Shown here: positions 3,680 to 47,320 of the stretch, piece after piece
Numbering within the stretch: position 1 is the stretch's first letter
Layout: the number at the start of each line of letters is the position of its first letter
DNA from: Octopus sinensis
Lineage: Eukaryota
Direction: 5' to 3'
DNA length: 64,000 nt
Assembly (NCBI RefSeq): GCF_006345805.1
Contig: NC_043021.1
Location: 5,952,001-6,016,000 of the forward strand
Translations under genes and position numbers: made by a program
The notes under the pieces: model-generated
Database searches by the model: none
The model's input: only the letters and a program-made list of their open reading frames with translations
Told to the model about the DNA's origin: nothing

Positions 3680-4080
3680 CCATTACATAAGAGAGAAGTG
3701 GAAAAGATACCTAGATGACTGCTTTATCATTTGAAAGGACACCATTGATAAAATTTTGGAGTTCAAATCAATACCAAATAATATAAACTCTAACATTCAA
3801 CTCAATGGAATGTAGCAAAAATCCGCTCCCTTTTTTTGGATATTATGATAAAAAAAAAATCAATAACCAAATTATAACTGACATCTACTAGGAACCCATG
3901 GTCTCAAAGTAACATCTCTTGTGTAGCTCATGCCACCTGAAACACATCAACAGAAACATCCCCTTTTATTTAGCAAATTCGTATAATGGTTGCATGTATA
4001 TTTTATTTAGTATAAAATCTTGTTTGATTTCCTTCGTTATTATCAGGGTAATGGCAATTTCACTGAAATTTTTTAGGGGT
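3680..4080 (+). mobile_element. Degraded Penelope-like RT fragment
   Basis: WKRYLDDCFII motif at about 3698-3730, followed by degenerate PLE thumb sequence (FLDIMI, TDIY, HINRNIPFYLA). Confidence 0.7.
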
Positions 4081-4083
4081 GTA

Positions 4084-4868
4084 CATACTAGCAAATTCCG
4101 GGAGAGGGGCTACCCAGGGAAACCTCCAGTTACGTAAAACATCTGCAGGAGAGGCTGACTGAGGTACACCAGCAGGTTAGAGAAGCCCTGAAATTTTCGG
4201 GTGAAGTAATGAAGCGTCGGCACGACACCAGGGCTAGTGAGGACGATGAGGTGTGGTTCCACAACCCCCGGCGAAAGAGAGGGCAGTCTCCGAAGCTGCA
4301 GAGTCCTTGGGAGGGGCCTTACACGGTGGTGACTTGTTTGTCCAATGTAACATACAGGATTCGAGTAGGCAGGAGGTCTTCCCTGAAAATTGTACATGCG
4401 AAACGTCTGTGGAGGTACCATGGGACTGGCCAGTTCAGCTGGAGCTCGCCCTCGGAAGTACGGTTATAGTGTGCTTCTGTCGGGTCGACAAAGCTTAGGG
4501 AGAGGGTAGTGACATGAAGGTCAAAATGGAGAAAAAGTGCGGTGACCTAGTTTCGTGGTTTGGCGCCGGACAGACTGGGGAAAGCTTTTGTTCTGTCATT
4601 TCTAGGGAAATTAATGAGGTTGGAAGATACATCTGACCCTTATCCGGTCAAGCAAAGTTCAAGGAAAAAATCAAAATGCTACCCTTTAAAATGCGGCGAG
4701 CTGGGGGTTTGTTGATAAGTTGGCCTGGGTTGGTCAGAGACAGTGAATGTGAGAGCTGTCAGGCGAGGGGTAACAACAAGGATGACAAGTGTGACGAGAA
4801 GGACAGGCAGATAGTATTGAGGACATGTCAAGCGAAAGGAACTAAGGGAGATTACGGCGAGAATGCAG
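4084..4868 (+). mobile_element. Ty3/gypsy integrase C-terminus, polypurine tract and partial LTR
   Basis: Encodes KLQSPWEGPYTVV (GPY/F module). PPT AGGGAGAGGGTAG is followed by TG at 4510. Same family as 28690-29110. Confidence 0.85.
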
Positions 4869-5090
4869 CTATAAAGGATCCAGATACAGTTCCGAAAAAC
4901 ACCATTCTTGCAAGCTTTGATGTCACAAACCCATACACGAACATACCACACACCCTAGGTCTGGAAACAATAAAACAATCGGTAGAAAAATACAGGGAAC
5001 TCATAGACGAACGTATATATAGATATATTTACTGCAATATTTGCAGCCTTAATAAAGCTGTCTTCGTACGAAACAATTGTACCGAAATAT
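4869..5090 (+). mobile_element. Penelope RT fragment joined to the right half of a pLTR hammerhead
   Basis: TILASFDVTNPYTNIPH (RT motif). GTACGAAACAATTGTAC at about 5065-5081 matches the 3' half of the ribozyme at 19902-19990. Confidence 0.7.
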
Positions 5091-5225
5091 TGATCCATTC
5101 TTGTTGCTTTTTTCTTATTTATAATCACCCCGCATTATCTTATGGTTAACGCCATATAGATTTCTGGTGCATCTAAGTTAAGTACCACATTCATGTGAAT
5201 TCAACAGAACTCACTTGAATCTTAA

Positions 5226-6178
5226 TTGCTTTTACTGAATATATTCCCATACAATCTGTATGTTTTTCCGGTACTTAATTTCTCAGCAAGAATGGAGAAA
5301 GTAAACATTGAGTTTTCCCCTAAGGAAATCCCCCTTCACAGTAAAGACGAATATAACTGGCTACTTATCCATAGGATTAATGACTTCATTAGAAGAATTA
5401 GATGGAAAACGTACCACTTCGATGTCAAGCAGAAAAAGATCACTCAAGTAAGGAATATTGATAAGAACTTCGGCAGAATATTTAGAAGCAGAAAGAATCC
5501 ACCTCCGAACCCACTCCTGGAAAATTTCGAAAAGGATTTACTGAATCTCATAGAAAAGATTAGATTCAAAGAACACCCGTTAAGATACAACCCCCACCTC
5601 AAGCATCTCAGTAAATTTATTCATTCAACCCGGAACAAACAAGGAATATTAGTACCAGCTGATAAAACTGGTAATCTGTATAGAGTAGATTATACACTTT
5701 ACAGCAAGCTAATTAAGAAAGAGCTCAACTCCAAATACAAAATTACTACTAAGAGAAATTTAAAAGAAACAAACCTAGAAATGAAGGAATTTATGGAAAG
5801 ATATAATTTAACGGATAGAACAGAACCGCTTATACCGTGTGAACCTAGGATTAATCTCAAGGACTACAAAAGGAATTTCATGGAAAACCCGTCGGTAAGG
5901 CTTATTTGTCCAACTAAGTCAGATATTGGCCGACTTAGTAAATCTATCCTTGATATTGTTCTACCCCAAATAACCCCGCTTCTTCCCTTAAGTCTATCGA
6001 TAAATACCGATGAGGTATTAAAATGGTTTAACTCCCTAACCAATACTAATAATCTGGCCTTTATTCAATTCGACATAAACAACTATTACTCTAGTATTTC
6101 CCCTATTCTATTAAATAAATCACTTATATTCGCTATGAATCGCTCCCTCAGATCTTGAGAGGAAATAGACATTGTACT
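5226..6178 (+). mobile_element. Penelope-like RT, N-terminal part
   Basis: 310-aa ORF with VPADKTGN, PRINLKDYK..F..NPSVRLICPTKSDIG and FIQFDINNYYSSI. Further pieces at 6776-6945 and 7918-8205. Confidence 0.9.
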
Positions 6179-7319
6179 AATCCATGTAAATAAATCCCTT
6201 TTTAATCATGAAACAATGTATTTATTAATACACACACACACATCCACTACATTTGGTGACCCCGTCAAACGAATTGCGCCTTCCCCGGAACTAGCTTCAT
6301 CAACCGCGTCGAAGAATTACAGCTTGCACATCACCCGGCAACGAAACACCTGAGAATTCCGAACACAATGGACCTCCCGGAACCCCAGCGGCCAACATCA
6401 CACCTCCGATCGACATGGCATTTCAAGCTGCGATATTCTTGCATCATTCATTATTGTTTTTAAAAAAGAAATCACACCAAATCTGCACAAATGACCACCC
6501 CCACCGCAATCACATACAATAATCAGAATGACCACTGACCACCACGCGCGTAATTCAAAGTTTGTAAGTTCTTCAGTGTGATATCACCACGTGCGAAAAA
6601 AATTTTCAATATGGCTTCTGCATATCCAAGTCTAAAAGGAATTAATCACCGCGATATTGCCATTACCACGGCTACAACAGCAGGATAGCATTAATTGGCT
6701 TAAGAGGCATGGCCTTTTGAATACCCAGAAAATATGTATATCGTGTGGAAGTACCATGAGTGAAATAGCGAAAAATAGCTAGAAAAACATTTATAGAGTT
6801 TGAGGGAAAATTATGGACCAGAGCAGACACTCCTAATAATTTTGATATACCCATGGCTCCAGTGATTCGGCTGAGGTGACTAATTTAGTAGGCGTGTAAG
6901 AGTTAGCACTTCCTTCTCTAAGCTTAGATTTGAAATCGAATCCAAGAATCATCGGTCATCAAAAACCAATGCATGTATAGGCACGAAATTTAAAGATCCT
7001 TTGTTCTGTCAAAAAGTGATTGATCATCTCCCTTTGACCTGCGACCTCAGCCATGTCAGGCGAAGTTCAACTGGACAAGCGCTGACCTACTTAAGTAGTA
7101 ACTCTGTTGCAGTAAGTCTATCTTTCTAGCTGTTTCAAATATTATAAATACAAGGGAAAAATAGAGAAAGAAACACAATCGGAGCTGACACACCAGCAGA
7201 CACCCCGCATTTTGGAGACGACAGAAAAAATGCCTACAGGCTACTGTTTCGAATGATTCACGCACCCACCCACATACACAAACATATTCATCTTTATTAT
7301 GTGCTCTATACCAGCAATG

Positions 7320-7917
7320 TGTAGCATTTGCTTACAATTGTATGTAGTGTATTTATAATCCATGTAAATAAATCCCTTTTTAATCATGAAACAATTTATG
7401 TATTTATTAATACACACACACATCCACTACATTTGGTGACCCCGTCAAACGAATTGCGCCTTCCCCGGAACCAGCTTCATCAACCGCGTCGAAGAATTAC
7501 AGCTTGCACATCACCCGGCAACGAAACACCTGAGAATTCCGCCGAACACAATGGACCTCCCGGAACAGAATCCAGCGGCCAACATCATACCTCCGATCGA
7601 CATGGCATTCCAAGCTGCGATTTCTTTGAAAATTCCACCATTCTGGACCCACGACCCTGCATTATGGTTTTACCATATAGAGGCACAGTTTTCCTCTCAC
7701 AGAATACTGAGCGATGCATCTCGACTTTCGCATGTTATCGGTTCTCTATCGCCAGAAATAACAAACGTTGTCCATGATCTTATCATGGCACCACCCGGTT
7801 CTGTGTCGTACGACACTTTTAAAACCACGCTGATAAACAGAACCTCCGAATCACAACAGAAACGACTTCACCAGCTTCTGATATCGGAAGAATTGGGTGA
7901 CAAAACGCCGTCCCAGC
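7320..7917 (+). mobile_element. Ty3/gypsy short LTR, tRNA-Trp-type PBS and gag 5' part
   Basis: TGTAG...CTACA at 7320-7431 with AATAAA, and PBS TGGTGACCCCG at 7434. Gag motifs KIPPFW..DPALWF..IEAQF and EELGDKTPSQL. A partial copy lies at 6179-6435. Confidence 0.85.
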
Positions 7918-8419
7918 TTCAATTCGACATAAACAACTATTACTCTAGTATTTCTCCTATTCTATTAAATAAATCACTTATATTCGCTATGAATCGCTCC
8001 CTCAGATCTTGAGAGGAAATAGACATTGTACTTTTAGCTAGAAAAACATTTATAGAGTTTGAGGGAAAATTATGGACCAGAGCAGACACCCCTAATAATT
8101 TCGATATACCCATGGGCTCCAGTGATTCGGCTGAGGTGACTAATTTAGTAGGCGTGTAACAGTTAGCACTTCCTTCTCTAAGCTTAGATTCAAAATCGAA
8201 TCCAAGAATCATCGGTCATCAAAAACCAATGCATGTATAGGCGCGAAATTTAAAGATCCTTTGTTCTGTCAAAAAGTGATTGATCATCTCCCTTTGACCT
8301 GCGACCTCAGCCATGTCAGGTGAAGTTCAACTGGACAAGCGCTGACCTACTTAAGTAGTAACTCTGTTGCAGTATGTCTATCTTTCTATGGTATGTTCTG
8401 TTTAAACTTTATAAATAAA

Positions 8420-10182
8420 TATATTCTTGCATCATTCATCATTGTTTTTAAAAAAGAAATCACACCAAATCTGCACAAATGACCACCCCCACCGCAATCA
8501 CATACACCAATCAGAATGACCACTGACCACCACGCGTGTAATTCAAAGTTTGAAAGTTCTTCAGTGTGATATCAACACATGCGAAAAAATTTTCAATATG
8601 GCTTCTGCGTATCCAAGTCTAAAAGGAATTAATCACCGCGATATTGCCATCGCCACGGCTACTACAGCAGGATAGCATTAATTGGCTTAAGAGGCATGGC
8701 CTTTTGAATACCCAGAAAATATGTATATCGTGTGGAGGTACCATGAGTGAAATAGCGAAAAAAAATTTGTCGGATGAAGTAATATGGTCATGTGGAAGGC
8801 CTTGTAGGAAAACCGTTTCAATTAGAAAAGGAACATTTTTAGAAAATAGTAAATTGAACTGTCAACAAATTATAGATACATTGTATTACTGGGCCAAAGA
8901 AGATTTAGCCAAGGGAATAGGACAGGAATGTCATATAGCAAATGTAGCCGTAACAGATTGGAGGAAATATTTGCCGTGATATATGTGCAGAATATTATGT
9001 TGCACAGAACATTAAGCTCAGAGGGCCGAATCGAATTGTAGAGATAGACAAAAGCGCGTTTGTGAGAAGAAAGTATAATGTTGGCCATCGGGTTAATACG
9101 CAGTGGGTATTTGGCACGCTAGAAAGAGATACCAGAAGATGCTTTTTAGTGGCAGTGGAAGATTGGACAGCGGATACCCTTTTACAAATTATAGAAGACC
9201 GTATATTGCCTGGTACAACCATAATTTCCGATCTTTGGCGTTCGTATAATACGCTCAATCAGCTAGGGTACAGACATTTGACCTTGAATCATTCAATAAA
9301 TTTTGTTGATCCGGTACCATTTGCCACAACCAACCATATAGAATGTTTATGGAAGCATGTGAAGAATCGTAACAGAAGAGAAAACGGAACAGCCCGAAAT
9401 TTACTTCAGACCCATCTCATCGAACTCATGTGGCGCTATGAATTTAAGGACGATATATTCGGAAAGTTAATGGAGCAAATTCGACAGCTATATCCATGTG
9501 TTTGAGACCTTAGAGAGTATAAGTATCTACACAGCATAAGTATCACATTTATTTTTAAACTTAACTTCAAGCTTCATTTGTTTTATATTTTGATGCGTTT
9601 TTGATAAATTTTGTTGATCCGGTAACATTTGCCACAACCAACCATATAGAATGTTTATGGAAGCATGCGAAGAATCGTAACAGAAGAGAAAACGGAACAG
9701 CCCGAAATTTACTTCAGACCCATCTCATCGAACTCATGTGGCGCTATGAATTTAAGGACGATATATTCGGAAAGTTAATGGAGCAAATTCGACAGCTATA
9801 TCCATGTGTTTGAGACCTTAGAGAGTATAAGTATCTACACAGCATAAGTATCACATTTATTTTTAAACTTAACATTTGCCACAACCAACCATATAGAATG
9901 TTTATGGAAGCATGTGAAGAATCGTAACAGAAGAGAAAACGGAACAGCCCGAAATTTACTTCAGACCCATCTCATCGAATTCATGTGGCGCTATGAATTT
10001 AAGGACGATATATTCGGAAAGTTAATGGAGCAAATTCAACAGCTATATCCATGTGTTTGAGACCTTAGAGAGTATAAGTATCTACACAGTATAAGTATCA
10101 CATTTATTTTTAAACTTAACTTCAAGCTTCATTTGTTTTATATTTTGATGCGTTTTTGATAAATTTTGCGCTAGCTAGTGCC
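8420..10182 (+). mobile_element. Merlin (IS1016/ISXO2-like) DNA transposon, frameshifted, with triplicated 3' end
   Basis: CxxC zinc ribbon (CISCGGTM), IVEIDKSAFVRRKYNVG, QWVFG, ILPGTTIISDLWRSY and TNHIECLW. Putative right terminus GCGCTAGCTAGTGCC. No matching left TIR was found. An N-terminal partial copy lies at 6436-6775. Confidence 0.9.
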
Positions 10183-10560
10183 CTGGAATTTGAGTCGTAT
10201 GTGAAATCCAGCACCAGCAATTTCTGAGTGAGTGGCGGCTCTGGATTCTAAGCAAAAAGAGGAAAGATCCCCGAGGTTGACAGATTTGGGGATAGCTCTG
10301 AACCTTCTGAGAGGGACAAGGAGACGACTGGTGTGTGTTGCTGGCATTGTGGGAGACCTGGACATAGGCGGCAGGACTGCTACAGCTTGAGGAAAGAGAG
10401 AAAACCGGACGGTAGAGCGGGGTCTGCTTTCAAGGGCGAGTGCTGGAGGTGTGGAAAAAGGGGACACATGCAGTATGACTGCCCAACAGGAACTACGGAA
10501 AGCAAAGAAAGAGAGTTGGGAAACTAGGAGGAGTTGGTACCAATATGATGGTACCAAGTG
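10183..10560 (+). mobile_element. Ty3/gypsy gag C-terminus with two CCHC zinc knuckles
   Basis: CWHCGRPGHRRQDC and CWRCGKRGHMQYDC, then GN*EEL at the gag-pol junction. Confidence 0.85.
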
Positions 10561-10689
10561 GTGGGACCCCAGGGCTGCGAGGTACCACATTGGCTACAGG
10601 GGAAGAGCGCAAGGATAATCATAATAGCATTGGTATTGGTGATGCGGATGGGACAAATCCTTCTGGACACCTACCTGCTGATGTCGCCA

Positions 10690-11580
10690 CCAGCAAACGA
10701 GACCCCTGCACTGCACTAAAGTCCTGAAAATTGGAACATGGAATGTAAAGGGAATGAACATTGGGAAGTTGGACACCATCAAGAAGGAAATGAATCGGTT
10801 AAACATCGATATCCTGGGAGTCAGTGAAGTTCATTGAACTGGCGATGGTTTCTTCAACTCTGGTGATCATACAATGTACTTTTCAGGCAATAGTAAGACC
10901 AGACAACATGGAGTGGGATTTATTCTATACAAGAGAATATCCAAGTGTGTTGAAAGTTACCAGACCATGAGTGATTACCATTCGCATCAAAGCCAAACCC
11001 AACAACATCCCATTGCTACAAATCTACACACCAACTGCCGACGAAGACGAGACTGAACACTTCTAGGCAGAAATTCAGGGCGCAATAGAGGAAACACCAC
11101 GAGCAGATGTTGTGTATAGTCTGGGAGATTTCAATGCCAAAACTGGAGAAAGGGCAGAAGCAGACATCGTTGGCAAATATGGATTAGGAGAACAGAATGA
11201 AGCAGGAGATCGACTGGTCCAACTTCGTCAAGAACAACACATGCGGCTAACCAATGCTTGGTTTTGGCAACCAAGAAGACAGCTATAAGAAATCGACCTA
11301 TGATAAACAATGATGTGACTATAAAAATTCTTAACAGAACGTGTGTAAAATGTGGAAGGGTGTGCCTCTCAGTTGGAGGTCTAAAAAGGCATGTTAAGAG
11401 AGCGCATCTGGTGGCACCTGTTTCTCCTGCCAGCCAGCACAGTTGTCCAGTATGTAATAATATGTGTAAAAGCTTGGCCGGGCTTAAAAGTTACATAAAG
11501 GCATCACATGGCAACAATCAGGAATCATTTCAGTAAGTCTTCTCGGCAATGGCTTTTCTCGTGTAACAAAGATGCAACGG
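10690..11580 (+). mobile_element. Internally deleted RTE LINE (AP endonuclease fused to C-terminal C2H2-like fingers)
   Basis: LKIGTWNVKGMNIGKL..DILGVSE, HGVGFIL and GDFNAK, then CVKCGRVCLSVGGLKRH and CPVCNNMCKSLAGLKSY. Confidence 0.85.
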
Positions 11581-12030: not shown

Positions 12031-13774
12031 TAATGCCACCCATACCATAGAAAAAGAAACATCCCATAGAGTATGGCAAGACGCATATGCAGTATAGTGG
12101 CCGACTCACAAACACACCAAATAAGACTAAATGAACTTAAAAAGTTCCTACTAGAACAGAAATACCCACTCAAATTAATAAAACATGGAATCTCAAGAGC
12201 AATGAAACTGGACATCACACAACTCAGAACTCCAAAAAACAAAAGCAAAGAAAACATCATCCCATTCATAAACACACAACCCTGGAGTTACCAACATGTT
12301 TCAAATTATACAATCAAACTTACCAATAGTCGTACAAAGCCCCAAAATGGGAAGCCTATTAAACAAAAACTGCGTAAGAAACAGTAAACGCCAAGAGAAA
12401 AACCTGAAAAAACAACTGACAAGAGCAAAACCGAATTCTTTGTGAAAGAATGTGGAGATAGTAGATGTGGGATCTGCAGTAACCCCATCTACAAATATAT
12501 AGAGGAAAACAGCCAAATAAAATTAAGAGTGGACACACATTCAAAATAAATGCAAACATGAATTGCAAGACACAAAACTTAATATATTGCATAACCTGTC
12601 CCACGGGCAAGGAGAACTATATAGGTGAAACTGGCAATTCTTTATGCCAACGAGCCAGAATTCACCAACAACATATCCGACAGGGAGAGCTACAAAAAAT
12701 TCCACTAAGTAAACACTTAGAAACACGTGGAGAATGAAGATTCAAAATCTTTCCCTTCTATAAATGCCCAAAGAATGACACCTTCTTCAGAAAAAATGTG
12801 GAATAACACTTCATAGCAAAATTCTCTCCCAAACTGAATGGCTGAAAATATGAAAATCACATCGACTTCCTTATAAACCCATCTGGAACCCTAAGATATA
12901 TGCATATGTGGGTGTGTGGATGTACATACATAAATAGAGACATTCCTGCATCCAGATTTTCCAACCCATACGGGGAATGGGTATCAAGCATTGGACAATA
13001 ATGATAAGTCCAGATAGTTTTTTTGAAAAATGACTTTCATTATTCCTCATCAAAACAGACCCCCTTAGAGTAACCATCTGGTCTTGCCATTTTCACAGAC
13101 CAAGAATCAACTTGTCATCTTCTATTGAAAGAACCGACCAACTGTATAGATATAAAAACATTTTTTCTTCTTTCTTTCCTTCTCTTTTCCATTGACTTTA
13201 AGAAAAAACACATTTTTTCACTTTGAAAATATTTTTCTTTCAGACCCCCTGGTGAGCTGGTTGAACCAAAGTAAGCATCTGTTCTAGCCACCTACTAAAA
13301 AATATATTCTTTTCCTTTTCTCTTTGTCTCTTGTTCAAAATGCTTCCTTTCAGATACACAGACACACACTCCCTATCGCTTTCTCCCTCCACCATCTCCC
13401 CATTCCTCTCCCTCTTTTCTACCCTATACACTCCACATTACTCTTCCCCCCACCCCAACCCATTCACTAATACTATAAAAAGACAAATCCTTTCACAAGA
13501 TTTAAATCTGAAGAATCTATTAGAGCAGATGTAAGCGCTCATATGTGATTTATAGAAACATGTGACATATTAATAAATATTTGTACATGTACAACCATCC
13601 AGATCTCTGAGTACCTTACATTTTCTAATGTGTGTCATTCTACATTGAGAGAAGAAAGAGATGAACGCTTCAACTCTATGCTGCTGCCGCATTATGTCGT
13701 ACGTGAATGAGAGGATTTGCATCCCCAACCAAGAATTTTTAATGTAACACATGTCCTTGTGGAAGCTGTTGTGC

Positions 13775-13918: not shown

Positions 13919-14890
13919 GTTCCTCAAGATGGCTGTGGATCAAAAGAGGAGAACCATGGGGTAGTTAGTTGGCCATCTGGACACGGGGTCTGATCAGCAC
14001 CAGTTGGGTCACCTGGAGGAGGGTGTATGATGTTGAAAGACCCCAAAAACACCCGATGATGCCAGGCACATCACTAAAGAGGTGTCCAAATGCATCAGTC
14101 ATTGATGTATGCACACAACAAGCACTCTCAGTGACAACTAGGAAAGACTGGAAGACAACCATGAAGAGGGTGGTGACCACTGGAGAGTCAGTGACAGCCT
14201 GGAAAGGCGGCAACCTGGGCAGAACGGGCTGGCAACCCCAATGTGTGTCCTCTGAGGAGGAGGACTCCCAGAATAAGCTGCGATGAATCCAATGGAGAAA
14301 AACTGCCACGGGGTGCCTGATAGAGAGAGGGGGGGAGAATGTGTACCCCAGTTGGACAGATATATATCGTTAACAGACCCTAGCAATGGACAACGGACTA
14401 TGAGCAAGAAGTGTACATGCGATAAAGTCCGCAAGAACATCCACAGCCTAAAGATCCACCAAGTAAGGCTTAAAGTGCCCGTTGGAAGCAGAAACATCAC
14501 ATCGCACAGGTGGTCCAACCTGGTGAGACGCAGGAGAAACCCGGCCTGGCGTCACCCCATAGTGCCTGGAACTAATCCCCTGAGCATCAAATGGCCAGCA
14601 TCTAGCATGACCTCACTGTGGAAGCAGTTCGCATCAAGGGAGTGAGAAGGAGGAAGGTCATCCGCAGTAACACCAATGCAGCAGAGAGGGCCACAAGATG
14701 GCTGTGGATCGAAAGAGGAGAGCCATGGGGTAGCTAACTGGCCATCTGGACACAAGCTGGGGTCTGATCAACCCCATCTAGGTCACCTGGAGGAGGGCGT
14801 ATGATGCTGAAAGACTCAAAACACTCAATGGTACCAGGCACATTACTGAAGATGCGTCCAGATGCATCTGTCATTCATGTATGTACACAA
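13919..14890 (+). mobile_element. HERO/NeSL-type (restriction-like endonuclease) non-LTR retrotransposon: 3' end followed by an internally deleted copy
   Basis: C-terminal SSRWLWIKRGEPWGS* and AAERATRWLWIERGEPWGS*, each followed by the same ~190-bp 3' UTR. N-terminal degenerate finger KCTCDKVRKNIHSLKIHQ, plus PGETQEKPG..SPH and IKWPASSMTSLWKQF. Confidence 0.75.
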
Positions 14891-17620: not shown

Positions 17621-17629
17621 TATATATAT

Positions 17630-18905: not shown

Positions 18906-18984
18906 TAACGTGTTGGCGAACGATTTCAGGTGGGACGTGGGCCCTCTGCGGATGGAGGTCTCGAACCGTCTGTACGAGGGTCTC

Positions 18985-27555: not shown

Positions 27556-27639
27556 ACTGCAGATATAAAATCAGAGGCAGCGATGATTGATTACATAACA
27601 CTTTGAATTATTTATTTATTGAGAATTTGTACAGACAGT

Positions 27640-30025: not shown

Positions 30026-30062
<37 letters not shown>

Positions 30063-36079: not shown

Positions 36080-36157
36080 GGGCTCCAAAGTTTGAGGACA
36101 GGTGTGTACAAACAGAGGCTACATGTCAGGAATTAGGGGCTGCATCTCAGGCAATTG
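36080..36157 (+). other. Exon-like 78-nt segment (second copy 38529-38606)
   Basis: tatttatttcag|...|gtgagt, symmetric phase 1, open: APKFEDRCVQTEATCQELGAASQAI (APKCEDR... in copy 2). Confidence 0.45.
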
Positions 36158-38269
36158 GTGAGTATAAAATAATAGTTCCCAATTGATTTCTTTAAGGTTT
36201 TATTCCCCCGAGTATATTGTGCTTGAAAGAATAACTGAAAACAGCTTCCATTCCTATTTTCCAATTTAACGATTATCTGTATAATAATTGTATTAAAGAT
36301 ATCGATTTACTGTGAGTTTATGAAATACCCATTGAGGTTAATGCTGTTGGTAATAATGTTCAAATTAGAAGACACAATAGAGTAAATTTTCTCATTTGGT
36401 CACAGAACTCATCATCATCATCATCATCGTTTAACGTCCGTTTTTATAGTAGCATGGGTCGGACGATTTCACTGGCAAGGCAGTAGGCTGCGCCAGGCTC
36501 CAATGTGATCTGGCAAGGTTTCCACATATGTTTGCCATTCCTAACGCCAACCACTCCGAGAGTGTGGTGGGTGCCTTTTACGTGCCACCGACACAGGAGC
36601 CAGTCGGGGTGGGGGCTGGCATCGACCACGTTCGGATGGTGCTTTTTACGTGCCACCGGCACAGGGAACCAGTCAGGCGGCAGTGAGAAGGACCTATGCT
36701 TCTATGGTACTTATAACGTGACACAGGAACAGGTGACAGTCAGGTGGCACTGGCATCGGTCACAACTACAATTTCCATTTTGATTTCGATCTTGAATTGC
36801 TTTTGATTTGTCATTTCTCTTATTGCCTGGTGGACTATGATGAAAATGAGGGGTTTAGGAATGATCCCTAGTGAACTCTTCTTCACTATACTCATTGCCG
36901 ATCCTCACCTTACTACAGGGTCTCTTCAACTCTTATAATCGCTCGTCAATCCCTAGTTTCCGCATTAGCTGTAAAAAGGATTCTATTAAATATTCCACTG
37001 AAATTTCATAAAATCAAGGTTAACGTGGTTGGTAAAATGGATAAATAAGAATACATAATAGAGTTAATGATGTCTTTTAGGACAGAGAACTAAAACATGT
37101 TGTTGTTTATTTGTAAACAGGAGAGTTAACGAGAAAGATTTTCTTTCTTTTACTACTAAGGTCTTTCCAAAGTTTTCTGATAGGTTATTGTTATTGTTGT
37201 TGTTATTGTTATGTAGGCAGATGTCTGTCATGACATGTTGTTTAGGTACGTACCCTGAATGTCTCAGGTCAGAATAACTTTGTTATAAATTAAAGAAATT
37301 AAAAATCAAATCTCTAAGATTATAAGTATAATGATCATTAACGTTGATTAAATATTAAATTTAGTATTGAACGGTGAACATGTTTACATTTAAACAAAAT
37401 ATTGGTGTTGACATAAAATATAAAGATAGGAATTAAATATGAGTTCCCTGTGTGACTTGAACTCACAAATCATTGTTTGTAACTAGACATAATATACACT
37501 TATTACATTGTTTGAACAACATTTACCATCCATATAGTCATACTTTTTCTCACACTTGTTAGATTTTAGATGATATTAATGCTAAACGAGGCCCAGTTTT
37601 CTGAATGTTTCACCCTTTGGTCTTGATTGTTGCGTTCAAATTATTTAATGGAAGTTAGTCATTGTTATTTGACCAGGAAATGAATTAATCATTAGTATTT
37701 GGCAGTGGACTTGGTTACATCTTTCTTCGTTTGCTCATGGAACTACCATAATATTAGCTGTGCTGAGACACAATCATATTCATAGTAATGAAGGTTATAT
37801 GTTCTTTACTCAGATTATATACAATCTATATTGATATCTAGTATTGCACCGTCAAGCACAGTGCCATTGTATCACATATATACCCAATTATCATGATAAT
37901 TAATAAGCTATAATTCATTAACTCTCTTACATTTGTATGTATGAAATGTAAATTTATTTTGTCATAGGGACATCGTGTACCCTCACCTAACATTTTATAT
38001 CTTGTTATGGATCATGTTGTGGAGATGATTTTTAGGGGACAGATTGTGTGTGGGATGGAGCGTATGCACATAAAGGATATCTTTATGACCTCAGTTTTAC
38101 TTAATTAGAGAAGAATGTTGATTAGTGAATTCTAGAGATGAGCGGACTGTGTCATGCCATAGATTTGGCACAGTTATAAGAAAAGAAAGACAATGCTAAG
38201 AGAAAACTCTTATCAAGTGTTAATTGAATAAGATAATTGCAACATTGTTAGAATATTTAATGTGTTTTT

Positions 38270-38305
<36 letters not shown>

Positions 38306-38859
38306 GAGGGTGGATTTAGAAATGTTAGTCTGTTTTATTGTGGACATATTGGGCTATTACATGGGACCACTGTAGAAAGTACAGAAATATTGACCAAAAC
38401 CATAGTGGTCAACATTTGACCATTAACGACAGAAATTGAATGTCTCACAATAACAAGACAGAGTTTAATAAAAATAAAGATGAAGAAAGTTTCTTTTTAA
38501 ATGTAAAACTTGGAAATATTTATTTCAGGGGCTCCAAAGTGTGAGGACAGGTGTGTACAAACAGAGGCTACATGTCAGGAATTAGGGGCTGCATCTCAGG
38601 CAATAGGTGAGTATAAAATAATAGTTCCCAATTGATTTCTGTAAGGTTTTCTTCCCCCGAGTATATTGTGCTCGAAAGAATAACTGAAAACCGCTTCCAT
38701 TCCTATTTTCCAATTGAACGATTATCTGTATAATAATTGAATTAAAGATATCGATTTACTGTGAGTTTATGAAATACCCATTGAGGTTAATGCTGTTGGT
38801 AATAATGTTCAAATTAGAAGACACAATAGAGTTAATTTTGTCATTTGGTCACAGAACTC

Positions 38860-39695
38860 ATCATCATCATCATCATCATCATCATTTAACATCCGTTTCT
38901 TATGGCGGCATGGGTCGGACGATTTCACTGGCAAGGCAGTAGGCTGCGCCAGGCTGCAATGTGATCTGGCAAGGTTTCCACATATGTATGCCATTCCTAA
39001 CACCAACCACTCCGAGAGTGTGGTGGGTGCTTTTTACGTGCCACCGACACAGGAGCCAGTTGAAGTTGGGGCTGGCATCGACCACGTTCGGATGGTGCTT
39101 TTTACGTGCCAACGGCACAGGGAACCAGTCAGGCGGCACTGGCAACAAACAATGTTTGAATGGTACTTATTATGTGCCACCGGCACGGGTGCCAGCCAGG
39201 CGGCACTGGCATCGGCCATAATTACAATTTGCATTTTGATTTCGATCTTGATTTGATTTTGATTTGTGATTTCTGGTTTTTGGTTTTACTTGACTCGGAA
39301 ATTCTTCTCAAGCACAACTTATCACTCTGTGATTCAAGGGTACTTTTAAAAAGGGCTGGTTATGCGCCACTGGCATATGCTACAGCTGTGATCTCACTTC
39401 ACTTGCCGAGTCCTCTTAATCACATCATATTTCTAGAGGTCTCTGTCTCTTGCCATTACCTCTGTGAGTCCCAAAGTTCGAAGGTCGTTTCACTACGTCA
39501 TCCCCTGTCTTCCTGGGCCACTCCTTTCCACGGGTTCCTTCCACTGTTAGGGTGTAACACTTCTTCCCACAGCTCTCCTCATCCATACACATGTCCATAC
39601 CAGTGCTGTTGTCTCTCCTGTACACCACATCTGATGCTTCTTATGTCTAACACTTCTCTCAGGCCTCTACACTCTGCCTTGTGTACACACTGACA
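38860..39695 (-). mobile_element. RTE LINE 3' end with 3' UTR and (GAT)n tail (sister copy 34400-35165)
   Basis: Minus-strand MDEESCGKKCYTLTVEGTRGKEWPRKTGDDVVKR, the degenerate RTE RT C-terminus. Confidence 0.8.
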
Positions 39696-40344
39696 TCGTT
39701 GCGTTCAAATTATTTAATGAAAGATAGTCATTGTTATTTGACCAGGAAATGAATTAATCATTAGTATTTGGCAGTGGACTTGGTTATATCTTTCTTCATT
39801 TGCTCATGGAACTACCATAATATTAGCTGTGCTGAGACACAATCATATTCATAGTAATGAAGGTTATATGTTCTTTACTCAGATTATATACAATCTATAT
39901 TGATATCTAGTATTGCACCGTCAAGCACAGTGCCATTGTATCACATATATACCCAATTATCATGATAATTAATAAGCTATAATTCATTAACTCTCTTACA
40001 TTTGTATGTATGAAATGTAAGCTTATTTTATCATAGGGACATCGTGTACCCTCACGTTACATTTTATATCTTGTTAGGGATCATGTTGGGGAAAGGTGTA
40101 TGGAATTTGGCTTGTGGAGATGACTTTCAGGGGACAGATTGTGTGCGGGGTGGAGGGTATGCACATAAAGGACATGTCTTTATGGGCGCAGTTTTACTTA
40201 ATTAGAGAGGAATGTTGATTAGTGAATTCTAGAGATGGGGGGACAGTGCCATGCCATAGATTTGGCACAGTTATAAGAAAAGTAAGACGAAGCTAAGAGA
40301 AAACTGGTATGAAGTGTTAATTAAATGAGATAATTGCAACAGAA

Positions 40345-41520
40345 GCGGACACCACGGAAAACACTTTCTATCGTATAAAAACCAAAAAATTCCCTCCCAG
40401 GATTAAAGGCTTGGAAGATTTCGAAGCGGACCTGCTGAAAATTATGAACAAAATAAAATTTCGTAAGTCTTTTAACAATTTCCATCATAAATTGAAAAAA
40501 AGATATTAAACATATAAAAAGCCCTCCCCCAAAAAGACGCCTTTATTACTATTAAAGATCACAAAGAGAACTTCCTTTCCAACCCTAAATGTAGGCTTAT
40601 CAACCCAGCCAAGTCAGAACTTGGCATTATTAGTAAAGAAATTTTAGATAAAATAAATGCGAAAATTAAGACCGATACTAGGCTAGTACAATGGTCCAAT
40701 AGTATAGAAGTCGTAGACTGGTTTAAAGCCATTAAGAATAAGAAAAAAGCGAGGTTTACACAATTCGATATTGTTGATTTTTATGCTTCTATCTCTAAAC
40801 AACTGCTAGATAAAGCCCTCGTCTTCACAGAAATTAGTACAAATGATAAGGACATAATCTTCCATGCTAGAAAGACCTTACTTTTCAGTGAGAATGCAAA
40901 GTGGGTCAAAAACACCGACACAGAGGGCGCTTTCGAAGTGAGCATGGGGTCAAATGATGGGGCAGGCATTTGCGATCTTATTGGATTTTTTCTCCTAGAT
41001 ACCTTAGGTAAGACATTCCCTGACGTACATTTCGCCATCTACAAAGATGATGCCCTTGCCTTAACAGCTAATACAAATGGACCAGCACAAGATCGTTTTA
41101 GGAAGGATATTATCCAGCTAATGAAATACTTCGGGCTTAGTATAACTATAGATACTAACCTGACGGTTGTCAATTTCTTAGACGTTTCCTTAGATCTTAA
41201 TAAGAATATTTATAAGCCTTATAGGAAGCCCAATGATAGACTAAGTTACATTAATGTAGGTTCATGCCATCTCCCTATAGTATTCAAAAATTTAGTTAAA
41301 AATATTAGTAAGAGAATTTCTAGCCTCTCCTCCGATAAGGACATTTTTAATAGCGTTGCCCCAGTTTATAATAAGGCTTTAAAAGATAGTGGTTTTAGCG
41401 AAAAAATAAAATATACACCCGTTACTAGCCCAACAGTAAGGAAAAGGAATAATAGAAATAGAAAGGTAATTTAGTTTACACCCCCTTACTCACCCGAGGT
41501 GGCCTTCAATATAGGTAAAG
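40345..41520 (+). mobile_element. Penelope-like RT fragment
   Basis: AFITIKDHKENFLSNPKCRLINPAKSELG, QFDIVDFYASI, FEVSMGSNDGAGICDLIG, YKDDAL and NFLDVSLDL. Confidence 0.9.
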
Positions 41521-44500
41521 AAAACTTAGGCCTTAGGATTACCTTAGACTCGAACTTAACCAAAGCTAACTTCCTTGACGTTACCCTCGATTTAGAAACC
41601 TTCCTTTATTACCCGTACCATAAACCTAATGAATCCCTTAGATACATAGACATTAATTCTAACCACCCCAAAAATATATTAGACAACGAATTAGATGGTC
41701 TTTTTCGACCACCCTGATGTAGCATCTACCAATAATGAAATGTACGGCTTCAAATCTAATAAGGCTCCTCCCACCAACAGCCTACTTGAACCTTTTGAAG
41801 AAGACCTCTTCCTTATGATAAAAAATATCAAATTCAGGAAAGTCAACCTACCTTTCCAAACGGACCTTAATGAGAAACTCTCGAAAATGAAAAGCTCCCC
41901 GCACCTCCATGTCCCTTCCGACAAAACAAAAAATATTTACGCGGTGATTCCCGATACCTACAACAGACTGGCTGATAACGCCATCACAGCTAAGTACAAA
42001 AAAGTTGATGACACGGCTTTAACTGAAAGTAACTTAGCCGGGAAGAAGATCGCCACTTCCCTTAAACTGGATGACCGAACAGAACCTCTGAGGGTTATAC
42101 TTTTTTTAAAAACTTAGGCCTTAGGATTACCTTAGATTCGAACTTAACCAAAGCTAACTTCCTTGACATTACCCTCGATTTAGAAACCTCCCTTAAATTG
42201 CCACTTCCCTTAAACTGGATGACCGAACAGAATCTCCGAGGGTGAAGTCCCCACACTTCACCCTAAAAGACCACAAAAACAATTTCGACAATAAACCATC
42301 GGTCCGACTGATTAACCCAACCAAGTCTGACATTGGATCTGTCAGCAAGATCCTGGACAGGATTTTACCTAAAATACGTGAAGCATCACCCCTTCCACTC
42401 TGGAATAGGACTTCCGAGGCAATAACTTGTTTCCGAGATTTACCTGACAAGAGCAACACCCGCTTCCTACAATTAGATATCGAGGAATATTACGCCTCTA
42501 TATCGGAGAGCCTGCTGATTGACATGATTAACTTCGCTAGGACCTTCTCCACCATCACCGAAGCCGAGCAGGATGTGATCCTCCATGCACGTAAGACCTT
42601 TCTTTACCATGACGGATCCCACTGGATCAACAAAAAATCCTAGACCCCCTTCGACGTCAGCATGGGTGCTAGCGACTCGGCTGAAATAAGTGACCTTGTG
42701 GGCCTAGTCATCCTCCATAGGTTGAAGACCCTATTCACAGGCCTCTCCGGTGGTCTCTACCGCGATGATGGCCTTTTTGCCCTACACAAAATAAACCCTA
42801 GGACCACGAATGGGTTCCGGAAAAACCTTTATACTTTTTTTAAAAACTTAGGCCTTAGGATTACCTTAGATTCGAACTTAACCAAAGCTAACTTCCTTGA
42901 CATTACCCTCGATTTAGAAACCTCCCTTAAACTGGATGACCGAACAGAACCTCTGAGGGTGAAGTCCCCACACTTCACCCTGAAAGACCACAAAAACAAT
43001 TTCGACAATAAACCATCGGTCCGACTGATTAACCCAACCAAGTCTGACATTGGATCCGTCAGCAAGAAGATCCTGGACAGGATTTTACCTAAAATACGTG
43101 AAGCATCACCCCTTCCACTCTGGAATAGGACTTCCGAGGCAATAACTTGGTTCCGAGATTTACCTGACAAGAGCAACACCCGCTTCCTACAATTAGATAT
43201 CGAGGAATATTACGCCTCTATATCGGAGAGCCTGCTGATTGACATGATTAACTTCGCTAGGACCTTCTCCACCATCACCGAAGCCGAGCAGGATGTGATC
43301 CTCCATGCACGTAAGACCTTTCTTTACCATGACGGATCCCACTGGATCAACAAAAAATCCTAGACCCCCTTTGATGTCAGCATGGGTGCTAGCGACTCGG
43401 CTGAAATAAGTGACCTTGTGGGCCTAGTCATCCTCCATAGGTTGAAGACCCTATTCACAGGCCTCTCCGGTGGTCTCTACCGCGATGATGGCCTTTTTGC
43501 CCTACACAAAATAAACCCTAGGCCCACGAATGGGTTCCGGAAAAACCTTTATACTTTTTTTAAAAACTTAGGCCTTAGGATTACCTTAGATTCGAACTTA
43601 ACCAAAGCTAACTTCCTTGACATTACCCTCGATTTAGAAACCTCCCTTAAATCGCCACTTCCCTTAAACTGGATGACCGAACAGAATCTCTGAGGGTGAA
43701 GTCCCCACACTTCACCCTAAAAGACCACAAAAACAATTTCGACAATAAACCATCGGTCCGACTGATTAACCCAACCAAGTCTGACATTGGATCCGTCAGC
43801 AAGAAGATCCTGGACAAGATTTTACCTAAAATACGTGAAGCATCACCCCTTCCACTCTGGAATAGGACTTCCGAGGCAATAACTTGTTTCCGGGATTTAC
43901 CTGACAAGAGCAACACCCGCTTCCTACAATTAGATATCGAGGAATATTACGCCTCTATATCGGAGAGCCTGCTGATTGACATGATTAACTTCGCTAGGAC
44001 CTTCTCCACCATCACCGAAGCCGAGCAGGATGTGATCCTCCATGCACGTAAGACCTTTCTTTACCATGACAGATCCCACTGGATCAACAAAAAATCCGAG
44101 ACACCCTTCGACGTCAGCATGGGTGCTAGCGACTCGGCTGAAATAAGTGACCTTGTGGGCCTATTCATCCTCCATAGGTTGAAGACCCTATTCACAGGCC
44201 TCTCCGGTGGTCTCTACCGCGATGATGGCCTTTTTGCCCTCCACAAAATAAACCCCAGGACCACGAATGGGTTCCGGAAAAACCTTTACACTTTTTTTAA
44301 AAACTTAGGCCTTAGGATTACCTTAGATTCGAACTTAACCAAAGCTAACTTCCTTGACGTTACCCTCGATTTAGAAACCTCCCTTCATTACCCGTACCAT
44401 AAACCTAATGAATCCTTTAGATACATAGACATTAATTCCAACCACCCCAAAAATATATTAGACAACCTAGTGAAAAGTGTCTCCATTAGGATATCTAGCC

Positions 44501-44905
44501 TCTCTGCCACCGAGGATATCTTTAATGCCGCAGCCCCCTATTACGAGGCCCTGGCCCGCAGTGGCTTTAGAGATAAGATCACCTACATTAGCATAGCCCC
44601 ACGCCCACCCAAGAATAATAGGCGAAGACACATTAGCTGGTACAACCCACCCTTCAACCGTGAAGTTTCAATACCTGTAGCTAAAATTTTCTTCACTCTC
44701 TTACAAAAACACTTCCCCACCCAACATAAGTACTATACAATCCTTAATAAGAACACCATTAGACTCTCCTACTCCACCACACCCAATCTAGCTAGGAACC
44801 TAGCCAACAATAACGTCAAAAAACTTAATAAATCTACTTTTTCCGAAGCCCATCCAGCATCCGACAGCAACTGCAATTGCAACTGCCCTGATAAGACTAC
44901 TTGCC
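41520..44905 (+). mobile_element. Penelope-like RT with the catalytic core repeated three times in tandem
   Basis: GTGAAGTCCCCACAC at 42242, 42959 and 43696 (717- and 737-bp periods). Each unit carries TLKDHK..VRLINPTKSDIG, MGASDSAEISDLVG and YRDDG. The last copy continues to CNCNCPDKTTCP. Confidence 0.92.
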
Positions 44906-44907
44906 CA

Positions 44908-45907
44908 GGACATGACAAACTGTGTCATATTAGACCAGTAACTGACAAACTTTCTGAGACATGCTTGGAAAACTACAATCCTCATAAAGAACAGTCCATT
45001 GATTAAGGAATGATAACCTTCAAAGGAAGACTGTCATTCAAACAGTACTTACTGGCCAAACCCACAAAATTTGGAATAAAAGTATGGGAGCGTGCTTCAC
45101 CGAACAATGGATACGTATGGTGAAGGACCTAACTTGGAAATTGATTGGAAAATCGCATGTGATTTACATGGACAATTTTTTATCAAGCCCAGAACTGAAT
45201 GCTTGTTACATGAAAAGATCTACTCTTGTGGCACCGTTAGAATAAATCACCGTGGAATGCCAGAAGCGATCAAAAGTGCCAAATTAAAGAACAGAGGAAA
45301 ATCCCTTACAATGCAGAAAGGCAACCTAGTAGCAACAGCATGGAAAGACAAGAAGATTGTGACTTAACTAAGCACAAACTGCGATCCTACACAGAGTAGT
45401 GCAAAGACATCAAAAGGATGGGACCCTAAAGGATGTGTCAGCTCCAAGTGTTTCCGAGCTATACAACAAATATATGTTTGGTGTAGACTTGGCTGACCAA
45501 AAGAGGCTGCAGTATTCCACTTGCAGAAAAGCCAAAAAAATGGTACAAGTACTTGTTTTGATCTTGCACTTGTCGATTCCTTGATTTGCATGCAAAAATC
45601 GCCAAATCATAAGTTGCTGACCAAAACAAACAAGGAAAAAAAGAGAACGCAGTTGGACTTCAGAATGGCATTGGCGCAGCAGATGATCGGAACATTCAGA
45701 GGAAGTAGAAAGCGTAGGGCACCTGGAATGACGGGAAATTGTGAGGATGCACATTGGCCCATTCAATTTGAAAAAGCTGGACGATGTAAGGGATGTGCAA
45801 AGCAGAACAAGAGACACGAAGTCTCTACTGGATGCAGACAATGTAATGTTAGACTGTGCATAAAGAATGACTGCTTTTTCAAGTACCACCAAGAACTGTT
45901 AAAATGA
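44908..45907 (+). mobile_element. piggyBac transposase pseudogene fragment
   Basis: EQSID*GMITFKGRLSFKQYL..KPTKFGIKVW, YNKYMFGVDLADQ, and a C-terminal cysteine-rich domain RCKGC..TGCRQCNVRLCIKNDCFFKYH. Confidence 0.9.
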
Positions 45908-46033
45908 ATTAATTACACTTATTGTGTATATTTCAAGGAATGCTATGTAAATATTGTAAATGAATGCCATTTTTGAAATAATTAACTTTTGGGGGTTTAT
46001 AAAACAGAATTTATAAAATATTCCAATAAATAA

Positions 46034-46392
46034 ATGAGACGCTGCCAGCTACCACCAATCAACAAAAAGGCTGGCCAGGCAGAAAAAACCCTGCAAGAGT
46101 CAAGTCTGTTGGTTCGAGGAGCACAACTATTCAACTCCATTCTGGTACATGTCAGAAATCTATCAGGATGCAGTGTGGAATCATTCAAATTGCAGCTGGA
46201 TAGATACTTAAGCACCATTAGAGATGAACCCCATCTCCCAGGATATACACAACGAGCACAAACTGACTCAAACTCGCTCCTACACATGTCAAAATTAAAC
46301 AGAGAATACAACCTGGCAACCACACCAGACTCTGAGGGTGGAGTCTTCGACTTGGCCTGAGCATGGACTCAAACTCAAATGAAATGAAATTG
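46034..46392 (+). mobile_element. LINE RT C-terminus and 3' tail (CR1/L2 group sensu lato; possibly the family of subfamilies A-C)
   Basis: SLLVRGAQLFNS..VRNLSGCSVESFKLQLDRYLSTIRDEP..GY..RA..SNSL, followed by a short TCAAA/TGAAA tail. Confidence 0.7.
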
Positions 46393-46509
46393 CGAGTTTT
46401 ATGTGTGTACCATTCATTCCAGCAGCAAAATATCTCTGGTAATTAACCCTCACACTGCTGCTGCAGTGAGAGATAAGAACTCCGTGTAGTAGTGAACAGC
46501 CAGATCAGC

Positions 46510-47320
46510 TATGATAGATAAGAAGTTAATGAAATTGTACTTAAGGCCCTAATATATGCAATGAATAAGGTGGAAATGACCAAGGATGAAGTTAAAGTAG
46601 TAAAAATGGCCAGAAAATCATTTATCAGGTATAATATTAAATTGTGGTCTAGGAAAGACACCAGGGATTTTTTGATATCCCTATGGGAGCACCGGATTCC
46701 GCACAGGTTACAGACTATTAGGGATTTACTTATTAGCAGAACTCCAATTAGAAAATTAATATATTGGAGGGTAAATAACAGGTATAACCCAACCTTACCA
46801 TAAAATTAACAAAAACCTGGAATATATTAATGCTAAGAGTAACCATCCACCTTCAATTAAGAAAGCATTAGCAAATAATATAGGGAATTTCATTACTCTC
46901 TTCCAACTAAGGGATATTCAATAAACATGCACCAAATTATAATGAAGCACTTCATAAGGCAGGATATAACAATAATATTTTAAAGAAAACAATAAATATA
47001 AGGACATATTTTCTAGCAATAAATTTGGAGTTGGTTATTCTACCACTAACGTTGGCAATATTTCATCCTTTAATAAATTTAAATATAATAAGTTTTATAA
47101 TAATAAATTAATACCTCCAATGGAGACCAGAATACAATTGATTGTAATTGTAGAGATAAGACTAAATGTAAATTTAATAAATGTAATGTTGAGGATGTAG
47201 TATATAAATGTATTGTGATTTTGAATGATAACAAATACTTACATAGGATCGACTTCCAATAAAACTAAATCACGGGTGGCCCAACATATGAATTCTTTTA
47301 AGAACAGAAATTTGGGCAAG
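46510..47320 (+). mobile_element. Degraded Penelope RT and GIY-YIG fragments
   Basis: KMARKSFI..KLWSRKDT, YINAKSNHPPSIKKAL, CNCRDKTKC..DVVYKCIV and YIGSTSN. Confidence 0.8.

Follow-up and report, generated by a model that had tools for sequence, protein, structure and literature searches.

In Drosophila, flamenco and other uni-strand clusters giving rise to PIWI-interacting RNAs (piRNAs) comprise tens of kb of truncated, nested transposable element (TE) fragments situated beside a protein-coding gene, and these fragments lie in a near-uniform orientation, so that one transcript of the opposite strand is antisense to the TEs. flamenco itself is dominated by gypsy-type long terminal repeat (LTR) elements and spans several hundred kb; its own promoter has been mapped, and its piRNA output and function are proven. 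Here, a candidate locus of this type is described from Octopus sinensis. It lies in a stretch of 64,000 nucleotides (NCBI RefSeq assembly GCF_006345805.1, contig NC_043021.1, positions 5,952,001 to 6,016,000 of the forward strand), further called the window, to which all positions below refer unless another species is named. The locus is a block of ca. 44 kb (ca. 3.5-47.4 kb) adjoining the POLE2 gene on its downstream side, and its coding TE fragments lie almost without exception on the plus strand, i.e., opposite to the strand of POLE2.

Cephalopod genomes are very repeat-rich, and the activity of long interspersed nuclear elements (LINEs) has been linked to the cephalopod nervous system. No mapped piRNA cluster was found in the open literature for any cephalopod; small-RNA libraries exist for Octopus bimaculoides (PMC12479628). 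In other molluscs, according to the parts of two reports drawn on here, PIWI proteins and piRNAs are broadly expressed, the clusters are enriched in TEs, favour young Gypsy elements and DNA transposons, and have reads from one strand, and a 'typical unidirectional' cluster has been described in a slug (PMC6128900, PMC12506671), which makes the idea of a piRNA locus in Octopus biologically plausible. Two further situations bring TEs into a common orientation. Within gene bodies, autonomous LINE and LTR elements tend to lie antisense to transcription, short interspersed nuclear elements (SINEs) being unbiased, while head-to-tail arrays, such as those of Drosophila HeT-A/TART or of Penelope/Athena, consist of few retroelement families co-oriented by the way they integrate.

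Orientation of the coding TE fragments

The block is a dense array of mostly truncated TE fragments of many families: ca. 29 kb of its 43.6 kb matches TE proteins, and nearly all the pieces are fragments. Comparison of all stop-to-stop open reading frames (ORFs) of at least 70 amino acids (aa) on both strands with Pfam (a set without PF26215 and PF28514) gave ca. 20 matches to TE domains on the plus strand of the block and none on its minus strand. The former comprise gypsy integrase domains at 4.3 kb and 28.0-29.0 kb (Integrase_p58_C twice, Integrase_H2C2, and rve), DUF7041 at 7.6 kb, the Merlin/IS1595 DDE domain (DDE_Tnp_IS1595) at 9.1 kb, gag zinc knuckles (zf-CCHC) at 10.4 and 18.6 kb, GIY-YIG at 12.6 kb, mariner helix-turn-helix (HTH) domains at 16.4 kb, CCCH/Torus domains of LINE ORF1 at 23.7, 25.4, and 32.3 kb, apurinic/apyrimidinic (AP) endonuclease (Exo_endo_phos, Exo_endo_phos_2) at 26.5-27.1 and 33.0-33.4 kb, a weak RVT_1 match at 40.7-41.1 kb, and the piggyBac DDE domain (DDE_Tnp_1_7) at 45.2-45.6 kb. 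Over the whole window, minus-strand ORFs of this size gave no match to a TE domain, and their only real match is that of POLE2 (DNA_pol_E_B), showing that the pipeline is able to see minus-strand genes. ORFs of 43-69 aa gave no Pfam match on either strand and are uninformative.

As Pfam is nearly blind to Penelope-type reverse transcriptases (RTs), three libraries of fetched TE proteins were compared with both strands by tblastn, and all three matched the block on the plus strand only. The Penelope-like library (homologues, ca. 700 aa long, of the ORF at 43.6 kb) did so at 5.3-6.3, 6.8, 7.8-8.3, 19.0-19.7, 40.3-45.1, 46.5-47.0, and 47.1-47.4 kb, the LINE library (Exo_endo_phos and RVT_1) at 23.5, 25.8-27.6, 32.5-34.3, and 46.0-46.3 kb and, beyond the block, again on the plus strand, at 50.2-50.7 kb, and the RTE-like library (full-length members with endonuclease and RT) at 10.7-11.3 and 20.8-21.5 kb.

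Counted as merged loci, the coding TEs of the block stand at 15 plus to 0 minus, and as fragments at ca. 20 to 1. The single minus-strand piece is a short, degenerate C-terminal tail of an RTE element at ca. 34.9-35.1 kb, of which a segmental duplication has placed a second copy at ca. 39.4-39.6 kb; it can be recognised in translation, but its tblastn similarity is weak (E ~0.04-0.07), and it is followed on the minus strand by SINE-like sequence whose other copies lie in POLE2 introns in both orientations. The initial annotation of the window had stated that the coding TE fragments are nearly all on the plus strand, with one duplicated RTE 3' end as the sole exception, and both statements agree with these results. 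It had also placed the SINEs of the block mostly on the minus strand, and the SINE-like copies inside the block are indeed co-oriented with the RTE tail, few as they are (three before the duplication).

The features of the block and the adjoining gene are as follows.

3504-3731, plus: short Penelope-type RT fragment (...RYLDDCFII) at the left edge of the block; motif in translation, no Pfam match.
4092-4524, plus: gypsy-type integrase, C-terminal fragment; Integrase_p58_C, E=1.7e-9; 89% nucleotide identity to 28682-29126.
4637-5146, plus: Penelope-type RT fragment, its 3' part (5026-5116) repeating 19928-20020; read from motifs.
5226-6335, plus: Penelope-like PLE2_N, N-terminal region through RT motif 1; tblastn, E=5e-52; 50% aa identity to the 43.6-kb copy.
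7440-8273, plus: DUF7041 gag-like ORF (E=9e-25 at 7632-7880) and a duplicated PLE2_N piece (tblastn).
8623-10168, plus: Merlin (IS1595-type DDE) transposase fragment, 3' part in tandem triplicate; DDE_Tnp_IS1595, E=1.4e-14 at 9068-9439; repeats 98-99% identical.
10252-10724, plus: retroviral-type gag zinc-knuckle fragment; zf-CCHC, E=3e-6 at 10438-10485.
10724-11285, plus: RTE-like AP-endonuclease fragment, family 1; tblastn, E=2e-11; full-length representatives carry Exo_endo_phos and RVT_1.
12070-12734, plus: Penelope C-terminal region with GIY-YIG (E=7e-4 at 12576-12689); 85% nucleotide identity to an Octopus vulgaris copy.
13969-14642, plus (weak call, both strands being open): unclassified ORF pair, without database support.
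16221-17621, plus: complete mariner with terminal inverted repeats and an intact ORF; HTH domains; SETMAR catalytic domain, E=1.5e-3.
17650-18486, plus: N-terminal half of a Penelope RT, PLE1 (ADKGGA, KIHK...PGRPIVS); tblastn, E=7.6e-79 to a copy in the O. vulgaris locus L001.
18417-18662, plus: second gag zinc-knuckle fragment, not similar to the first; zf-CCHC_2, E=1.5e-3.
18961-19735, plus: GIY-YIG end of the PLE2 family in tandem duplicate (355-bp period); tblastn, E=1e-26; 95-97% nucleotide identity to O. vulgaris copies.
20818-21499, plus: RTE-like AP-endonuclease fragment, family 2; phmmer, 2293 matches, the best at 1.3e-39; tblastn, E=1e-57.
21687-27585, plus: LINE-a, ORF1 (Myb/SANT-like, CCCH/Torus) and endonuclease; Pfam Torus, zf-CCCH, and Exo_endo_phos; tblastn, E=2e-72.
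27607-29126, plus: gypsy integrase, zinc-binding, core, and C-terminal domains, frameshifted; Integrase_H2C2 1.6e-15, rve 5.6e-13, Integrase_p58_C 8.8e-13.
31656-34335, plus: LINE-b, ORF1, endonuclease, and the start of RT; Exo_endo_phos_2; tblastn, E=4e-140; 58% aa identity to LINE-a.
34405-40341, minus: segmental duplication (91-95% identity) with RTE tails at ca. 34890-35110 and ca. 39400-39640 and SINE-like 3' parts.
40333-41471, plus: Penelope-like RT, PLE2b; RVT_1, E=2e-4; tblastn; 43% aa identity to PLE2.
41475-45120, plus: Penelope-like PLE2 with an internal 734-bp tandem duplication; tblastn, E=1e-135; 95-97% identical to O. vulgaris copies elsewhere.
45203-45904, plus: C-terminal part of a piggyBac transposase; DDE_Tnp_1_7, E=1e-19; matches a Mytilus piggyBac-derived protein.
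46034-46357, plus: C-terminal tail of a LINE RT; tblastn, E=3e-5.
46531-47392, plus: further Penelope-like fragments at the right edge of the block; tblastn, E=5e-12 and 2e-5.
48094-61740, minus: POLE2, exons for residues ca. 191-527; homology to human POLE2 and Pfam; transcription heads towards the block.

Independence of the insertions and comparison with other loci

A shared orientation could also have come about in a functionless, low-recombination 'TE graveyard' growing by neutral accretion, with co-orientation arising by chance among fewer independent events, amplified by tandem or partial-tandem integration of Penelope elements, target-primed insertion into older tails, and head-to-tail duplication. 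We consider this explanation rather unlikely. In its favour, the block proves in self-comparison to contain a segmental duplication of ca. 6 kb (34.4-40.3 kb) and at least five tandem duplications of recent origin, all in direct orientation. A 276-bp unit, 92 codons long, is repeated 4.5 times in frame within the Myb/SANT-like region of LINE ORF1 (21687-22931, 99% identity), and recent head-to-tail copies of 96-99% identity occur with a 734-bp period in the Penelope RT (42095-44385), as a triplicate of 250-310-bp units in the 3' part of Merlin (9296-10168), and with a 355-bp period in the GIY-YIG segment (duplicated at 18984-19684). Pieces of LINE ORF1 and endonuclease recur between 23.1 and 26.8 kb, and the DUF7041/PLE2_N stretch sits in a scrambled duplication at 6.1-8.8 kb (6064-7128 / 7351-8762). 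The locus thus seems prone to local tandem duplication. As a result of the 276-bp array, the plus strand has a long repetitive ORF and the minus strand a shadow ORF of 494 aa.

The ca. 20 independent insertions counted in the initial annotation are therefore inflated by duplication, while the diversity of the fragments restores most of their independence. At least 17 distinct families are present on the plus strand: gypsy integrase, DUF7041 gag, two unrelated gag pieces, Merlin, mariner, piggyBac, two RTE-like elements, LINE-a, LINE-b, one LINE tail, PLE1, PLE2_N, PLE2, PLE2b, and the unclassified ORF at 14 kb. PLE2_N, PLE2, and PLE2b share 43-50% aa identity and LINE-a and LINE-b 58%, so that duplication cannot derive one from another; the two gag pieces are unrelated by the criterion of E<1e-3, and likewise the two RTE endonuclease pieces. 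With one event allowed per family, at least 17 stand on the plus strand against 1 on the minus strand (binomial p ~1e-5 to 8e-5), and because so many unrelated families share one orientation, the bias is not a by-product of local tandem duplication.

Moreover, the fragments whose classes use a mode of integration other than target-primed reverse transcription, namely three DNA transposons and five LTR-type gag or integrase pieces, are all on the plus strand (8/8, p=0.008), and their orientation is thus not set by the insertion mechanism; there is none that would orient them. For the same reason an array of retroelements aligned by their own integration was rejected, as Merlin, mariner, piggyBac, and the gag and integrase pieces of gypsy/BEL type share the common orientation. 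Some junctions do fall at (TA)n or (TG)n tracts, as accretion would have it, yet only ca. 8 alternating purine/pyrimidine tracts are available for ca. 25 junctions in the block, and insertion directed by microsatellites or tails was discarded as a general cause. The fragments differ in age as well: with copies elsewhere, those of PLE2 share 95-97% identity and a PLE1 piece 85%, and others have no nucleotide match. As this range (97%, 95%, 85%, and undetectable, next to one intact mariner) indicates, elements were captured repeatedly and at different times.

For comparison, four other Octopus loci of 262 kb in total (two of O. vulgaris and one each of O. sinensis and O. bimaculoides; a small, non-random sample) were searched with the same library and thresholds, after removal of the four elements by which these loci had been found. 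They contain 13 coding TE loci on the plus and 12 on the minus strand, with a longest same-strand run of 4, against 15:0 in the window (Fisher p = 0.0011); with fetched proteins only, the figures are 10:0 in the window against 12:7 (p = 0.06). Strong co-orientation is therefore not the default in Octopus DNA, and a bias of this size as a common feature of other windows, a possibility raised in the initial annotation, was not seen in these 262 kb. The O. vulgaris control locus L002 does contain a co-oriented Penelope-like run of four matches at 5.6-17.2 kb, which is in keeping with neutral accretion. The orientation bias of the block is real and statistically unusual.

POLE2 and the surroundings of the block

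The window has a G+C content of ca. 41%, is eukaryotic, and carries TE copies 93-97% identical to O. vulgaris sequences. POLE2 lies on its minus strand and is transcribed towards the block, as had been proposed from the outset: the concatenated translations of seven exons match residues 191-524 of the 527 of human POLE2 with E = 4.8e-102. The exons extend from ca. 61.7 kb to 48097-48186, the stretch that contains the last coding exon; its translation ends in ...ENSKIE, and a stop codon follows at ca. 48,095. Only ca. 0.7 kb separates the end of the coding sequence from the right edge of the block. Since the stop codon precedes the block, the latter is not an intron of POLE2 but lies downstream of the gene. 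In the ca. 700 nucleotides past the stop (47400-48096, minus strand) the canonical AATAAA is absent and only variants occur, e.g., AATAAG near 47952, and hence the 3' end of POLE2 cannot be placed from the sequence, and read-through into the block is conceivable.

The flanks differ from the block in composition. A SINE-like family of ca. 400 bp (type copy 736-1125) has 14 copies, in both orientations, in 20 kb of flanking DNA, namely in 1-3.4 kb and 47.3-61.3 kb (the left flank and the POLE2 introns), and self-comparison found none within 3.7-47.3 kb. A tRNA scan made to orient the SINEs found no tRNA. The block is thus sharply bounded by SINE-rich DNA and compositionally distinct, and either is younger than the SINE burst or forms a compartment that the SINE does not enter. 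The observed-to-expected (o/e) CpG ratio is 0.60 in the block (3680-47320), 0.49 in the POLE2 gene body (47321-64000), and 0.75-0.81 in two TE-rich O. vulgaris loci (L001 and L002), the value for the block giving a weak hint compatible with germline transcription or methylation. The orientation of LINEs persists beyond the block: CR1/L2-like RT tails at 50144-50659, 55442-55627, and 62438-62821, in POLE2 introns, are on the plus strand, antisense to POLE2, which is the pattern expected of intronic LINEs.

These observations bear on a second alternative, which we regard as improbable, that the bias reflects filtering by ordinary transcription with no role for piRNAs. A minus-strand unit, be it read-through of POLE2, a long alternative 3' end, or a long non-coding RNA or another gene, would cross the block, and autonomous TEs in the sense orientation would be purged for their splice and poly(A) signals, as happens with LINE and LTR elements inside genes. 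The continuation of the plus orientation into the POLE2 introns, the presence in both orientations of SINEs, which lack such signals, and the CpG depletion of the block, weaker than in the POLE2 gene body and stronger than in the O. vulgaris loci, are what such filtering would produce. Nevertheless, the coding sequence of POLE2 stops before the block, the block does not lie between the exons of an opposite-strand gene, and Pfam comparison of the minus-strand ORFs revealed neither exons nor domains of a host gene in the block or in the left flank (1-47 kb), where short unannotated exons are possible. The possibility mentioned in the initial annotation that the block is one intron of a minus-strand gene is thereby excluded for POLE2 and finds no other host gene among these matches. 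Furthermore, the antisense bias of intronic TEs is usually moderate (ca. 60-70%) and weak for DNA transposons, against ca. 95% here, the block does not share the SINE load of the neighbouring POLE2 introns, and poly(A) hexamers are not depleted on its minus strand.

That the block was imported whole, as a giant composite element or as a segmental copy of a co-oriented locus elsewhere, is most improbable, for all its sharp boundaries against SINE-rich flanks and the piggyBac transposase fragment near its right edge, since no terminal repeats, inverted or direct, enclose it in the self-comparison, its contents are truncated unrelated elements of differing age (at least 17 families, which also disposes of the single amplified composite considered in the initial annotation) and not a coherent gene set, its pieces do not stand side by side in the other Octopus loci examined, and an import would merely move the orientation problem to the source locus.

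A candidate uni-strand piRNA locus

Few processes are known to bring TE fragments of different families into a strong common orientation. What remains is either selection on orientation relative to a minus-strand transcript, as in a uni-strand piRNA-type locus, or neutral accretion by chance and duplication. We tentatively favour the former and put at slightly under even the chance that the block is a uni-strand piRNA cluster, a TE trap filtered by orientation and transcribed from the minus strand. In such a locus, a long minus-strand RNA would begin at the 3' end of POLE2 or shortly beyond it, whether by read-through or from a promoter within ca. 47.4-48.1 kb. The RNA would cross the block antisense to nearly every autonomous TE fragment and would be processed into piRNAs, providing guides against Penelope-like elements, LINEs, RTE-like elements, gypsy/BEL, Merlin, mariner, and piggyBac. 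Insertions on the plus strand, being the 'useful' ones, would be retained, and the locus would grow by nested insertion and local tandem duplication. Judged by its architecture, the piRNA-cluster interpretation is plausible. The fuller proposal, that this is the first defined uni-strand 'master' piRNA locus of a cephalopod, fed from the 3' end of POLE2, holding antisense copies of many TE classes and growing by tandem duplication, is put forward with greater reserve.

Several observations weigh against a piRNA cluster. The short RTE-tail and SINE-like pieces of the segmental duplication are in the sense orientation with respect to the proposed transcript. Poly(A) hexamers on the minus strand, 39 AATAAA and 27 ATTAAA, both exceed the Markov expectation; the plus strand has 49 AATAAA, and the argument of the initial annotation from poly(A) signals therefore lacks support. 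In the cuttlefish Acanthosepion pharaonis no dense TE block was found in the first 10 kb past POLE2 (locus L003, 40034-50033; too short a stretch, in too distant a species, to be informative), and the sole TE fragment there is one of a LINE RT, antisense to POLE2, at 40734-41120; deep synteny is thus without support. A search for homologues of POLE2 returned no orthologue from Octopus. Finally, a look-elsewhere effect is possible, which would favour neutral accretion: a handful of such runs could occur by chance in a genome of 2-3 Gb if the window came from a whole-genome scan.

The plus-strand hammerhead ribozymes which had served as a supporting argument were not recovered, and that argument falls. 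Rfam gave no hammerhead match at the gathering threshold, nor at E<=1 in the whole window or E<=10 in the Penelope regions. A scan for core motifs yielded one plus-strand candidate (19898-19990, with a truncated copy at 5026-5116), which was rejected, as its minimum free energy structure is not that of a hammerhead and the other Octopus loci lack the motif. The only Rfam matches, sub-threshold ones to 'microRNA' models (24223-24287, 30004-30077, 16166-16236, and 15063-15215), all lie on (TA)n/(TG)n microsatellites or local palindromes and were dismissed as artefacts.

Individual elements

The alignment of the PLE2 family displays YRDDG, a CxC...C...C motif, and a C-terminal Y.G...FK.RY.NH nuclease signature, and the family profile matches a retron RT with E=0.006. 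Pfam recognises GIY-YIG only in the other Penelope family (12576-12689) and not in PLE2. On these motifs, the PLE2 fragments are classified as Penelope-like, with an RT followed by a C-terminal GIY-YIG nuclease that has a Cys motif upstream. In O. vulgaris (GCA_951406725.2), 'hypothetical protein' gene models of L001 (10001-108631, 98 kb) and L002 (10001-41913, 32 kb) begin in Penelope-like copies, which are 95-97% identical to 41.7-44.9 kb of the window; these models may be TE-initiated transcripts or annotation artefacts.

The mariner element has perfect terminal inverted repeats (ACAGGGTGTTCCAAAAGAAACAGTGCA...), a TA target duplication in a (TA)n tract, and an uninterrupted ORF of 348 aa, and it may come from a recently active family; an exact look-up of the ORF in public assemblies returned no record. 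The RTE endonuclease pieces had no match in a PDB search and were resolved by a search of representative proteins. The labels 'HERO' and 'Tx1-like ORF1' (the latter given to the unclassified ORF pair at 13969-14642) could not be verified.

Significance

The locus, recognisable by its sequence alone, offers a concrete place in which one-strand cluster architecture and selection on TE orientation can be tested in cephalopods, with a housekeeping gene as an anchor, and it may serve as a template for a genome-wide search based on orientation. If the piRNA-cluster reading is true, a unidirectional piRNA cluster, a known kind of locus, would be added in a lineage without described examples, an orientation-selected architecture of the flamenco type would have evolved or persisted outside arthropods, and cephalopod genomes would have a sequence-only signature for such loci. 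If the bias is neutral or results from ordinary transcription, the block is a warning against calling piRNA clusters from TE co-orientation alone.

Comparison with known systems

The block resembles the Drosophila uni-strand clusters in consisting of tens of kb of truncated, nested TE fragments beside a protein-coding gene, in an orientation that would make one opposite-strand transcript antisense to them. It differs in being dominated by Penelope-like elements and LINEs, together with three DNA transposons, instead of gypsy-type LTR elements, and in its smaller size; flamenco has a mapped promoter and proven output, whereas the Octopus cluster is predicted from architecture. With Deroceras laeve piC10 and the clusters of Lymnaea and Crassostrea it shares the phylum and the enrichment in TEs; those clusters were defined by small-RNA reads, with no analysis of TE orientation in the parts of the reports drawn on, while the Octopus locus is defined by TE orientation only (PMC12506671, PMC6128900).

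The antisense bias of LINE and LTR elements in gene bodies has its counterpart in the POLE2 introns and resembles the arrangement in the block, which nevertheless lies past the POLE2 stop codon, shows a much stronger bias that includes DNA transposons, and does not carry the intronic SINE load. Head-to-tail arrays likewise hold co-oriented retroelements, and the tandem and internal duplications of Penelope-like elements found here recall them, yet such arrays are driven by integration and built of few retroelement families, while in the Octopus block transposase, gag, and integrase fragments of unrelated classes share the same orientation.

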